From Oculina patagonica (Eukaryota): a DNA stretch of 64,000 bases. The notes beneath the pieces are model-generated. The model had not been told where the DNA came from and did no database searches. It worked only from the letters and a program-made list of their open reading frames with translations. This document shows positions 37,789 to 41,582 of the stretch, piece by piece. The position numbers and the translations under genes were made by a program. Within the stretch, counting starts at the first letter, position 1, and every line of letters starts with the position of its first letter. The stretch covers positions 14,880,001 to 14,944,000 of the forward strand of contig NC_135769.1 in the NCBI RefSeq assembly GCF_052425735.1, in the 5' to 3' direction.

Positions 37789-38083
37789 TGTTACGCCGCA
37801 AAATGTAATAATCGCCGCAAAATGTAATACTAACGCAAAATGTAATAACAATCGCCGCAAAATGTAATAATAACGCAAAATGTAATAAAATTAACGCAAA
37901 ATGTAATAAAGTTGTTAACGCAAAATGTAATAACTTTTTAACGCAAAACGTAATAAAGTTGTTAACGCAAAATGTAATAACTTTTTAACGCAAAATGTAA
38001 TAAACTTTCTAAAGCAAAATGTAAGAACTTTCAAAATGTAATAAACTTTCTAAAGCAAAATGTAAGAACGCAAAATGTAATAA
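37789..38083. repeat. Subterminal array of AACGCAAAATGTAATAA units starting with TGTTA (probable left end of the Ginger-like element)
   Basis: About 13 copies separated by short variable linkers. Confidence 0.8.
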
Positions 38084-38320
38084 CTCTTATTATAGTTCAC
38101 TCAACATAATTTTTGGATTCTGACTTGACGAGAGCAGTACGTTTTATCCCAAATTCTACTCCCTTGTCTTTTCAAAGTCAATCTGAAGACTTTCGAAGAT
38201 GAACCAAACACTTGCAAAAGTTTCCGAAGTTGACTCGGGTACTTCCGAAGATTTCCGAAGTTGAAGTTGATTTAAAAACTGTGAGCTTGTTTGCGATATT
38301 CCTCTCAAAAAGACGGCTAA

Positions 38321-38529
38321 GGGACGGGCCATTATTTTTGGAGGGGGTGAGAGGGGGGGGGGGGTGTGAAAAATATTGAAAAAAATTGTTTGCAAACACA
38401 ATATGTAAAACAAACAATAGTTTGAATTTTAAAAAAATGTTTGCAGAGGTGCATAATCTAAAAAAAGTTTCTAGAGGAAAATATTTCATAACCCCCCCCC
38501 CCCCTCCAAGAAAATAATGGTCTTACCCT
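38321..38529. mobile_element. Harbinger-like MITE
   Basis: TAA|GGGACGGGCCATTATTTT ... AAAATAATGGTCTTACCC|TAA. Confidence 0.55.
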
Positions 38530-38848
38530 AAGACCGAAAACGTGCGTGCAAGCTGCTGTTCTGTTTATCAGTGAACATTTTAGTTTGGCGACTCTGCTTT
38601 GCTGTTAAATCAAAGGCTTCTCTCTAATAGCGCGAGTTTATCGCAGTTATCATCAAAACGGCTAGTCAGAATATAATGCATTGTTTACGGCCAGCAATTT
38701 TTTCCTCGTTGAATTTCCTAGAAAAAGCCAGCTAAGTGCTTTAGTAGATCTAAGTAGCTGTCTGTAGTTGTCGAAACTTTTCTTGAATGATTAAGATGCT
38801 AGAAAAAAATAAACTTTTGTTCAGACAAGGCAAGGGCAGGGCAAGGTT

Positions 38849-41101
38849 TTCAGGTATGTTTTATCGATCATTGATGTTTTCAGTCGTTACCACTGGTTTA
38901 TTCCTTTAGAAAGAAAGTCGAGCTCCCAGATAGCACGTGAACTTGTTCGTGTTTACCAACAACATGGAGCACCGCAGGTCATTCAACATGATCAAGGTAC
39001 TGAATTTGCTGGAGCCGTAGCCGCGTTATGTAAAAAGCTGTGCATAAAAGTCATAAGAGGTCGCCCCTATCATCCCTAATCACAGGGGAAAGTTGAGAGA
39101 TCACACAAATCCTTCAAAAAGAAAATATTGTACGATTTTCTTGTCATGAAAAAAGCTGGAGTAAACTGGGCGAAGTCATTACCGGAATATGAAAGAGCTC
39201 TAAATCTGGATCCCAAAGAGGAGCTAGCGTGGAAGTCTCCGTTCGAGATTTACTATGAGCGCAAACCCAATATATTAGAAACAAAAGGAAACCAGCCTGT
39301 GCCAGAATGGGATATTCCCTCTAACAGATATCAGGGAATGATTCACCCACGCTCAAAGGATTACACAGATCATGCCAGAAAAACTCGTAAGTTAAGGAAT
39401 TTGGCCCATTCAGCGTGTGCAGACCGCATGGTGAAACGTGACGTGAGAAATAACCCTCCTTCCGTATACGATATTGGAGAGACTGTTCTAATTCGTTACC
39501 CTCCTGCAAAGAAAGTTGTAAGTAAACGGCATATTTTAGAGGCGGATATTATCAAGAGAAACTTACGCCTTCAGAAGTATCAGGTGGCATTTATATCACC
39601 TACCTCGGAGAAATTAACCTATAAATGGATCCCTGTAAATGATATAACCAGTGTTACCATGGAAAGAGAAAAAAAAGACAAGAAAAACTACATTGAAGGA
39701 GGCCGAAAGAAAGAAGAAAAGAAAGGCCCATAAGCAGAAATATCTGCAAGGATATGAAGACGACAGGTCTTTATTTGAAGATCGTTCTGGTTCAGCCCAT
39801 TACGTAATTTCTTACGATCCTCCCAAGGACGGAAATTGCCAATTTTCGGCGATAAGCAATTTACTTCAGGGAATAGGAATTTTCAGGTCGAACCAAACAT
39901 TGCGGAGAAAAATTATATTGAGGCAAACCCTTCAACAAGTGATGGGACCCCGCTTCAAAATTTCACCGATCTTCTGTGGCCTCAATATCTAGCCGAAATG
40001 TCGCGAAATGGTACATTCGGCGATCATATAACTCTTCAAGCTGCGTCCAATTTATTTAATATTGCGTTTGTCGTAATTTCATCCCTTGGACCCGGTGCTA
40101 CGGCGACTCTTTCGCCAATGGATTCAAACCCACTCTGTACTTTTATGCTGGGACATTATGCAGAGAATGCTGGAGAACATTACGTATGCTTGGAAAACGA
40201 GCCTGCCTGGACTGGCGACACAACCACAGCTTGTGAACAATCTTGTTCTTGCACCTGTTTTGCCTGGCGATAACGACACACCTATGGATAGCGACACACC
40301 ACTACTAGAGGAAATGGAAGGAAATCAGGAAATGGACGGAAATTAGGAAATGGATGGGCCCTACTTAAACCCCTGACTGCTTCGAAGAAATAATTCAGCA
40401 AACATTAGATTTGTATCCATATATGCGTCAAGCACTGCGAGTGGTTTCAAGATCATTTAAAACATAGGGCAGAATGCGTGGACATCATTAATTATTCATA
40501 ATCCACGAAGCGGCAAATTTGAATGCGAGAGCGCACACAATAAGAGAAGAAAGGACTCAAATTGGTCAAGTAGCGTTATAAAACTTGCTTCGGCGCTTGA
40601 AGTCAAAATCTTAAAACCTACGCACGGCTTTTTGAAGAAGAATGATGTACCTACAATTTAAGCCTAAAATGAAGAGCATTAAGCAAGTGGAAGGACTATT
40701 GTTTTGAACTTAAAAATACAGCAAAAACATGGTATTTTAGTATGGAGACCATTTTTGAAAGTGATTTTAAGAACATTTTACACTGTTTCGAGGAAACCTA
40801 CGCACGGCAAATGTAAGATACCACTTTCCTTTAACAAAATCCGTTTTAATTTTGAAAGTTTTAATCCGTTTTAATCTTGCCAATGATTTATCTTCCAGAA
40901 CTTAATGATATGCTAGATATACAGCACGTGAGTGTGCGAAGAATTATGAAACTAAAAGGGAAAAACAGCGGTGTCGTTCTTCGTTTAAGAGAGATCATAA
41001 ACTGTGTTAAATGGGCTTTCGCCTGGTTAAGTTTCATTGCAGCAGGATATGGATGGTTTTTCATATCCAAGATCTATTGGAAAGGTTTAAATTCAAAGTA
41101 A
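38849..41101 (+). pseudogene. Decayed Ginger/TDD-type DDE integrase fused to an OTU protease domain and an F-box-like C-terminal region
   Basis: YVLSIIDVFSRY..GAPQVIQHDQGTEF..GRPYHP*SQGKVER (TAA at 39077). OTU: DGNCQFSAI..TFGDHITLQAASNLFN..GEHYVCL. Then NPDCFEEIIQQTL..LRVVSRSFK and LPMIYLPEL. Several frameshifts. Confidence 0.8.
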
Positions 41102-41582
41102 TGCTAAGATCGTTTTTTTAAGATAATAATGTTACAGTTTAGTTTCAAACCTGTTGTTGTTAATGTTTCTGTTGCTTTTTTGTTAACTTTGTCTTAGTTG
41201 TCGTTGTTGTTGCTGCTGTTATCGTTGTTTCCGTTGAACGAGCAAAGTAAAAATAAATCTTGTTTGATTTTTAAATACCGTTATGTAAAAAGCATTTGTT
41301 TTCACTATAGGTAAACGAAAATCGTTTACGGCTCGTAAAGAAGAAAGATTACAAGCGTGAATTGAAGGTGGAAATTTCAGCCCAAACAATACAACTGAAT
41401 AAGGATAAAAGCACCTGATAATGCATGACAGAGAGCTTTAAAATTCCTTAGCGGTATCTGGATTTTACGAAGCCTGGCAACTCCGTTATGTTTAAGAACG
41501 AATCGGAAAGGTAAGCCACAGCTGAATGCGTTTTGTTTGTCATCCACTTCGAGCGAAATTTTTGTATGTGTATTATTAACAA

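Follow-up and report, generated by a model that had tools for sequence, protein, structure and literature searches.

The stretch of DNA analysed here, hereafter the window, comprises 64,000 nucleotides of the genome of Oculina patagonica (assembly GCF_052425735.1, contig NC_135769.1, positions 14,880,001 to 14,944,000 of the forward strand), and all positions given without further label are counted from its first letter. Positions 37789–41326 are a decayed copy, without its right end, of a cut-and-paste DNA transposon of about 5.3 kb. The family to which this copy belongs encodes a transposase in which an integrase, an OTU cysteine protease and an F-box-like module are united in one protein, family-wide.

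All features of the window copy lie on the plus strand. The left terminal inverted repeat (37789..38083) begins with TGTTACG exactly at 37789, and in its part at 37798–38083, with one mismatch allowed, GCAAAATGTAATAA occurs 14 times, where chance alone would give 0.12. These subterminal units are probable binding sites of the transposase; elsewhere in the 64-kb window no inverted copy of the GCAAAATGTAATAA end motif was found. The 5' non-coding region (38084..38826) is collinear, at 85–86% identity, with two sister copies on C5 and C7, which are described below, and contains an inverted repeat of a G-run and a C-run at 38335–38512. It is followed by the junction of a deletion of about 712 bp (38827..38838), with C5 positions 5550–6261 having no counterpart in the window.

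The integrase remnant (38840..39640) consists of the rve core, the post-core region and an SH3-like part. The Pfam rve match (E 1.6e-12) covers 38813–39076, and in a three-frame translation of the window the integrase motifs span 38858–39100. The second catalytic Asp (QHDQGTEF, 38984–39007) and the Glu (GKVER, within SQGKVER, 39080–39100) are retained; GRPYHP lies at 39059–39076, and an in-frame TAA at 39077–39079 separates it from SQGKVER. The Lys/Arg-rich linker that follows (39669..39743), with a +1 frameshift at 39679, looks like a nuclear localisation signal, judging from its composition. The OTU domain (39750..40230) is split by a 7-bp deletion at 39912 and keeps DGNCQF at 39828–39845 (DGNC, 39828–39839) and GEHYVCLE at 40172–40195 (GEHY, 40172–40183). 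The split fragment scored 22.1 bits with the Pfam OTU profile (cut-off 23.3), against 41.5 bits (E 2.4e-10) for the frame of the C5 copy.

Downstream of the OTU domain, an acidic variable linker (40245..40355), with a 7-bp insertion at 40245–40251, carries 18-bp repeats encoding EMxGN at 40308–40343; the window has one unit more than the C5 copy, and the C7 copy carries more such units. The F-box-like three-helix motif (GPYLNPDCFEEII...VVSRSFK, 40356..40461) has a +1 frameshift at 40370, so that its segment PDCFEEII...VVSRSFK is read at 40372–40461, downstream of the shift. A foreign interspersed repeat of 411 bp (40465..40875), absent from the C5 and C7 copies, is a secondary insertion. Beyond it, a C-terminal alpha/beta domain of about 70 residues (SVR..G..SG...W..AW...GW..I..I.WK; 40877..41101 with its stop) is encoded as LPMIYLPEL...IYWKGLNSK at 40877–41098, with the stop codon at 41099–41101. 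The last part is a 3' non-coding remnant (41102..41326), at the end of which homology to the full copies stops.

A preliminary description made from the window alone had reported most of these parts: a TGTTA left end with a subterminal repeat array, an rve-type integrase with QHDQG and GRPYHP..SQGKVER, a basic linker followed by an OTU domain with DGNC and GEHY, EMxGN repeats and a frameshift near 40371, and an interruption of about 400 bp before LPMIYLPEL...IYWK. All of them were recovered at the places given above, the interruption being the 411-bp repeat. The element had been placed at 37789–41280; its start proved exact and its end was set too early, since homology to the sister copies continues to 41326.

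The same description considered this copy dead, and comparison with the C5 copy, relative to which all lesions were scored, bears this out. With the deletion of about 712 bp at 38827/38838 the integrase lost its first catalytic Asp, and the protein its start codon and N-terminal domain. The remaining frame carries the TAA stop at 39077–39079, an in-frame 9-bp deletion at 39414 and four frameshifts, at 39679 (+1), 39912 (-7), 40245 (+7) and 40370 (+1). The 411-bp insert replaces about 21 bp of coding sequence, and beyond 41326 about 1.3 kb is missing, the right inverted repeat with it.

The two sister copies, nearly full in length, were recovered by a DNA search of the genome of the window (529 Mb), on C5 (93% identity) and on C7 (90%), together with a 76%-identical fragment on C4. 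The left 210–220 bases of the window element align with the left ends and, inverted, with the right ends of the C5 and C7 copies, and the full elements were delimited at 5,304 and 5,925 bp, respectively. Both have terminal inverted repeats of about 210 bp that start with TGTTACG. The right repeat sought for the window copy was located in this way in its sisters, though it is lost from the window. The target duplication turned out otherwise than predicted: 4 bp had been expected, and perfect duplications of 5 bp flank both full copies (AATGC and ACCGT); extension to a sixth base fails, and in the two copies scored a reading of 4 bp would require an asymmetric end. A 59%-identical subfamily (locus L016) shares the terminus, TGTTACGCCACAAAATGTAATAA, and in a 40%-identical subfamily (L018/L019) CGTAAATTGTAATA forms arrays. 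The subterminal repeat has thus kept its TGTAATAA core.

A single in-frame stop separates frames of 168 and 625 residues in the C5 copy, and the C7 copy has a foreign insertion in its integrase in addition to further frameshifts. When the genome was searched at the protein level in six frames, at least 85 matches came up, the majority interrupted by stops and frameshifts. Several subfamilies among them are 40–60% identical; in some of these, frames of 964, 855 and 684 residues are open and hold the parts in the same order. Another broken copy of the family was recognized in a 1.4-kb contig from a run of uncertain RNA/DNA type. The foreign insertion of the C7 copy (about 0.9 kb; L008 about 6900–7730) has an open frame of 256 residues which, by eye, resembles the part of a non-LTR (long terminal repeat) retrotransposon protein that follows the reverse transcriptase; it had no Pfam match. 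Just downstream of the part of the C5 copy that matches 38335–38512 (L007 about 5105–5281), very deep and only partly fitting contigs and RNA reads pile up, and a short sequence near this place is therefore abundant elsewhere too.

Naturally open frames or separate pieces were used for all protein analyses. The 625-residue frame of the C5 copy runs unbroken through the integrase core, the OTU domain, the acidic repeats and YLNPDCFEEII...SRSFKNIVDRQPLPMIYLPEL... to its stop. In the C5 and C7 copies, as in at least six other subfamilies of this genome, these C-terminal segments follow the OTU domain without a break in the frame. A word-based protein search returned 164 relatives, many aligned over 98–99% of the query including the C-terminal module, from, among others, Oculina patagonica, Montipora capricornis, Epinephelus moara, Mytilus coruscus, Lytechinus variegatus and Patiria miniata. 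The domain order is identical in coral and echinoderm homologues and in those of a fish and of metagenomic assemblies. That the C-terminal segments belong to the same element as the integrase and the OTU domain, as first proposed from the broken window copy, was confirmed by these frames. Judged from its open frames, the protein is one of about 800–950 residues, with the order N-terminal domain, retrovirus-type Asp-Asp-Glu (DDE) core, SH3-like part, basic linker, OTU, acidic low-complexity linker, F-box-like motif and alpha/beta domain.

When a profile of the module was compared with 1.84 billion representatives, 630 clusters (at 50% identity) passed an E-value limit of 0.001, and 304 of them a limit of 1e-10. 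The module was C-terminal in every one of the top 150 hits listed, and in eight of ten scanned proteins of middle length the OTU domain stood upstream of it; those short proteins that were inspected were fragments of this layout. Between the C5 subfamily and the L016 subfamily, the module is conserved at 58%, versus 59% for the integrase–OTU part, and the linker between them is unalignable. A 631-residue protein of the grouper Epinephelus moara (P0045, 36% identity) has the integrase–OTU–F-box-like layout, so the family reaches vertebrates. A further full integrase–OTU–module protein (P0078, 616 residues) is labelled as a bacterial metagenome bin (Sedimenticola sp.) and is most likely an animal contig binned with a bacterium.

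Full-length members exceeded the Pfam cut-offs for rve and OTU only. The rve core was above its cut-off, and the D, D, E triad is present in intact members, in the motifs QIDL..., HDQG.EF and GKVER. Among solved structures, the integrase core of an intact member came closest to the integrase of prototype foamy virus (PFV; E 2e-14), and Ty3 integrase also matched. An SH3-like stretch (GE.VL.R...KR....G.I.KRN...YKV) sits where a GPY/F module would be expected, and the literal GPY/F is absent. For the N-terminal region, seven full-length members had no match to Integrase_H2C2 or zf-H2C2, and an alignment of 14 sequences had no conserved Cys/His set. Its language-model neighbours are nevertheless Integrase_H2C2 clusters (0.90–0.91), and for these reasons the region may be a zinc-less H2C2 derivative. 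Many members, from corals to echinoderms, start with a hydrophobic stretch like a signal peptide, followed by basic residues; this start is present in L016:583-3474 (-), L018:871-3435 (+), P0003, P0006, P0013, P0025, P0098, P0099 and P0101, and absent from P0084, P0086, P0097 and P0066.

The OTU domain of family members scored 29–53 bits, above the Pfam cut-off of 23.3, and DGNCQF and GEHY were conserved in all members aligned. By these motifs, the protease of the family has its catalytic residues, Cys and His, intact. Its closest solved sequence was human OTUD3 (E 0.0013).

The segment of about 45 residues behind the acidic linker, LxPxxxEEI...LRxVSRxF, had been likened to an F-box. The Pfam profile F-box matched 11 of 23 members and F-box-like matched six, and no other family recurred; the best member reached 24.1 bits, with a cut-off of 24.3 (E 3e-5), and the sister copy matched at E 0.019–0.034. 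Profile–profile alignment by hhalign was carried out against 22 bona fide F-box-like segments from genes of this genome (Pfam PF12937, 53–63 bits), with a probability of 68% (E 4.6e-5) for 23 module sequences and of 88% (E 2.9e-6, score 31.1) for 147. By comparison with the score of 31.1, the reversed target gave 9.8 and 60 column-shuffled targets gave at most 16.0. The register placed LP on LP and V-S-R-x-F on V-C-x-x-W. In the 147-sequence alignment the conserved positions were L (90%), P (70%; Asn 24%), E/D, I/V, L, I (97%), L (76%), V (88%), S/N/C, R/K and F (91%), and the most conserved of them fall on the canonical F-box pattern LP...I...V[CS][KR]xW.

The AlphaFold2 model of the 121-residue module, built from a 23-sequence alignment, had a mean predicted local distance difference test (pLDDT) score of 90.3 and a predicted template modelling (pTM) score of 0.78, with helices at residues 11–24, 26–33 and 37–45 followed by a small alpha/beta unit. 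In an exhaustive structural search of 48,161 PDB representatives, F-boxes bound to Skp1 occupied ranks 1–4, 7–9, 12 and 14 (Z 3.8–4.8; root-mean-square deviation 2.0–2.9 over 39–42 residues). The top F-box matches were COI1, FBXL17, Skp2, FBXO42, FBXL2, FBH1, Fbw7 and FBXL5, and AnkB (rank 19, in a Skp1 complex), cyclin F, Cdc4 and beta-TrCP followed lower. Nine of the ten nearest shape sets in the ESM Atlas were F-box proteins, and the named neighbours by language-model features, which serve as leads only, were all F-box clusters (scores 0.83–0.89). Each of these lines is weak or moderate alone, and those from Pfam, profile–profile comparison, structure and the ESM Atlas are concordant. The resemblance first noted by eye therefore stands, and the models and profiles together make a true F-box fold probable for this motif.

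The last domain, of about 70 residues, was also modelled alone (module residues 46–121), with a pLDDT of 89 and a beta-alpha-beta-alpha-alpha-hairpin layout. No convincing fold match was obtained for it: the best Z score was 3.5 (ribosomal uL22 and thioredoxin-like chains), and in Foldseek all E-values were above 1, with winged-helix proteins scattered among the rows. A death-fold or CARD identity, suggested by a weak sequence match to MDA5 CARD2 (E 0.011–0.07), was rejected because the model is alpha/beta and not a six-helix bundle; a DCoH-like identity (E 0.41) was unsupported by the fold searches. The C-terminal tail KWAFAWLSFIAAGYGWFFISKIYW, hydrophobic in appearance, was also considered as a membrane anchor, a reading discarded because homologues are charged there and the model is a beta-hairpin.

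In the mechanism proposed, the integrase would bind the subterminal repeats containing TGTAATAA and move the element by cut and paste. The F-box-like motif would dock the transposase on host Skp1, and the transposase may act as, or compete with, a substrate receptor of the Skp1–cullin–F-box (SCF) ubiquitin ligase, with its last domain as the receptor part; in F-box proteins the substrate-binding part occupies the position of this domain. F-box proteins are commonly auto-ubiquitinated, and the OTU domain could strip ubiquitin from the transposase itself or from factors at the transposition site. Whether the module really engages Skp1 or SCF is, in our estimation, evenly poised. Only as a tentative proposal can the transposase of this marine-animal family be regarded as carrying its own ubiquitin-editing unit, as an SCF adaptor that, through a Skp1-binding F-box and a new receptor domain of 70 residues, would mark a host repair, chromatin or silencing factor for degradation while its active OTU domain would shield the transposase.

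Several observations weigh against an F-box transposase working in this way. None of the 23 members crosses the curated Pfam cut-off for F-box, and a profile search of the PDB sequences found no F-box protein. In the subfamily of the window, which makes up about 24% of the family, Asn occupies the position of the canonical Pro. The structural Z scores are below 5, which is expected for a motif of 40 residues yet is not decisive, and with the whole module all Foldseek E-values were above 1, though 12 of the top 50 rows were F-box proteins. The start resembling a signal peptide is hard to square with a nuclear enzyme bound to Skp1, and is odd beside a linker resembling a nuclear localisation signal. 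Finally, no reads from two small polyA RNA libraries with the same species label fell on the coding region of the C5 copy, from which silence is not implied.

The alternative that survives best holds that the three helices are not a working F-box and that they pack with the alpha/beta domain into a single compact domain at the C-terminus, which would bind the repeated end motifs of the element or hold transposase subunits together, the likeness to F-boxes being due to remote ancestry or to convergence of a common three-helix arrangement. The modelling of all 121 residues as one unit (pTM 0.78) would suit such a domain, as would the strongly basic tail and the weak Foldseek rows, which include several winged-helix DNA binders such as Fur, RepE and ESCRT-II, all at E above 1. 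The protein also has no recognisable sequence-specific DNA-binding domain, yet the ends carry at least ten repeated 14-mers, and both the replacement of Pro in a quarter of the family and the F-box scores, every one under its curated threshold, could be explained. On the other hand, the match between the module profile and that of real F-boxes keeps the register at all canonical positions and lies far above the shuffled controls, two independent libraries both gave F-boxes, and hardly any other three-helix motifs, as the closest shapes, and no DNA-binding fold was significant. On this evidence the compact domain is considered unlikely, and an F-box fold is preferred.

That the family is a multi-copy host gene, a domesticated integrase–OTU fusion that is not mobile, could be argued from the long intact frames that persist in several subfamilies and from the annotation of homologues in coral, fish and echinoderm genomes as "uncharacterized proteins". 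Full copies with long inverted ends, repeated motifs and differing 5-bp duplications at unrelated sites make it very improbable, as do the many broken matches among the 85 or more in the genome and the copies that have themselves been hit by other repeats. It is scarcely credible that the C-terminal segments come from a different element or a captured host exon adjacent only in the rearranged window copy, where frameshifts and the 411-bp insertion do separate them from the OTU domain, since they follow that domain uninterrupted in the C5 and C7 copies and in at least six other subfamilies, the arrangement recurs in proteins from other phyla, all of the top 150 hits listed are C-terminal and eight of ten mid-length proteins have the OTU domain upstream.

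With respect to known elements, Ginger1 transposons have TGTNR ends, terminal inverted repeats of 40–270 bp and 4-bp duplications of CCGG/CCGT, and their transposase has YPYY and an H2C2 finger in front of the DDE core, with GPY/F and a C-terminal OTU or Ulp1 protease behind it (Bao, Kapitonov & Jurka 2010, PMC2836005). The role proposed there for the proteases was in transposition or repair, with no F-box mentioned. The present family agrees with Ginger1 in its TGTTA terminus, which fits TGTNR, in its inverted repeats of about 210 bp, in the fusion of a retroelement-type DDE integrase with a C-terminal OTU domain in one protein, and in its occurrence in cnidarians and other invertebrates. In contrast, both full copies have duplications of 5 bp, no HHCC zinc finger or YPYY motif is detectable in the family, and a conserved module of about 120 residues, F-box-like plus alpha/beta, is added after the OTU domain. 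Duplications are of 4 bp in Ginger1 and 4–5 bp in Ginger2, and groups without HHCC have been noted (Kojima, PMC10045372). Ginger2/TDD elements (TDD-4, TDD-5) share with this family the TGTNR termini, an integrase-type transposase and duplications of 4–5 bp (PMC2836005, PMC10045372); they differ in that Ginger2 transposases retain the H2C2 finger and have no OTU domain reported, and in their preferred target, which is AT-rich (RTATAY), compared with AATGC and ACCGT here. The element had been called Ginger-type, a placement that holds for its TGT ends, repeat length and OTU fusion, and fails for the 4-bp duplication and the HHCC finger. It is therefore described as Ginger-like: its ends and OTU fusion resemble Ginger1, and membership is incomplete.

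A short parasite-encoded F-box-like motif with putative docking to Skp1 recalls the F-box effectors that hijack SCF ligases, such as AnkB of Legionella. The polerovirus P0 and the poxvirus ankyrin/PRANC proteins are viral F-box proteins that hijack SCF ligases. Unlike these viral and bacterial effectors, which stand alone, the motif described here is fused to a transposase and a deubiquitinase, and its binding to Skp1 is putative. The OTU domain of animal Helitrons and the Ulp1 of Mutator-like elements are likewise cysteine proteases for ubiquitin or SUMO borne by DNA transposons (PMC2836005), but they belong to other transposase classes and have no F-box-like partner reported. The literature searched contained no description of an F-box combined with Ginger or integrase–OTU transposases, in agreement with the earlier opinion that the combination of integrase, OTU and F-box was not known to have been described.

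Ever since ubiquitin or SUMO proteases were described in Ginger, Helitron and Mutator elements, their purpose in transposons has been an open question. With an F-box-like partner conserved right behind the OTU domain, this question becomes concrete and testable, namely whether the unit plugs into SCF and what the partner of the last domain is. If the proposal is correct, this family would provide the first example of a transposase constructed as an E3-ligase adaptor, the hijacking of cullin ligases, familiar from viruses and intracellular bacteria, would extend to an animal DNA transposon, and the module would provide a compact natural unit of deubiquitinase plus adaptor. The family also lies between integrase-type superfamilies, with Ginger1-like TGT ends and OTU domain, a TDD-like duplication of 5 bp and no zinc finger, and its intermediate features therefore bear on the delimitation of these superfamilies.

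Other observations concern the surroundings of the window copy. On the minus strand, stop-free stretches at 37106–37801 abut the left end of the element, and the part at 37106–37330 has a sub-threshold match to a reverse transcriptase (RVT_1, E 1.9e-4); the transposon has apparently inserted into the remnant of a retroelement that was there before it (37106–37801). The 411-bp repeat at 40465–40875 is present in at least 40 copies across the genome, with identities of 71–96%, and is without coding capacity. Just beyond the point where the transposon is cut off, a perfect inverted repeat of 83 nt with a 5-nt spacer lies at 41722–41892, and it is flanked by a second inverted pair of 40 nt (41608–41647 / 41685–41724).

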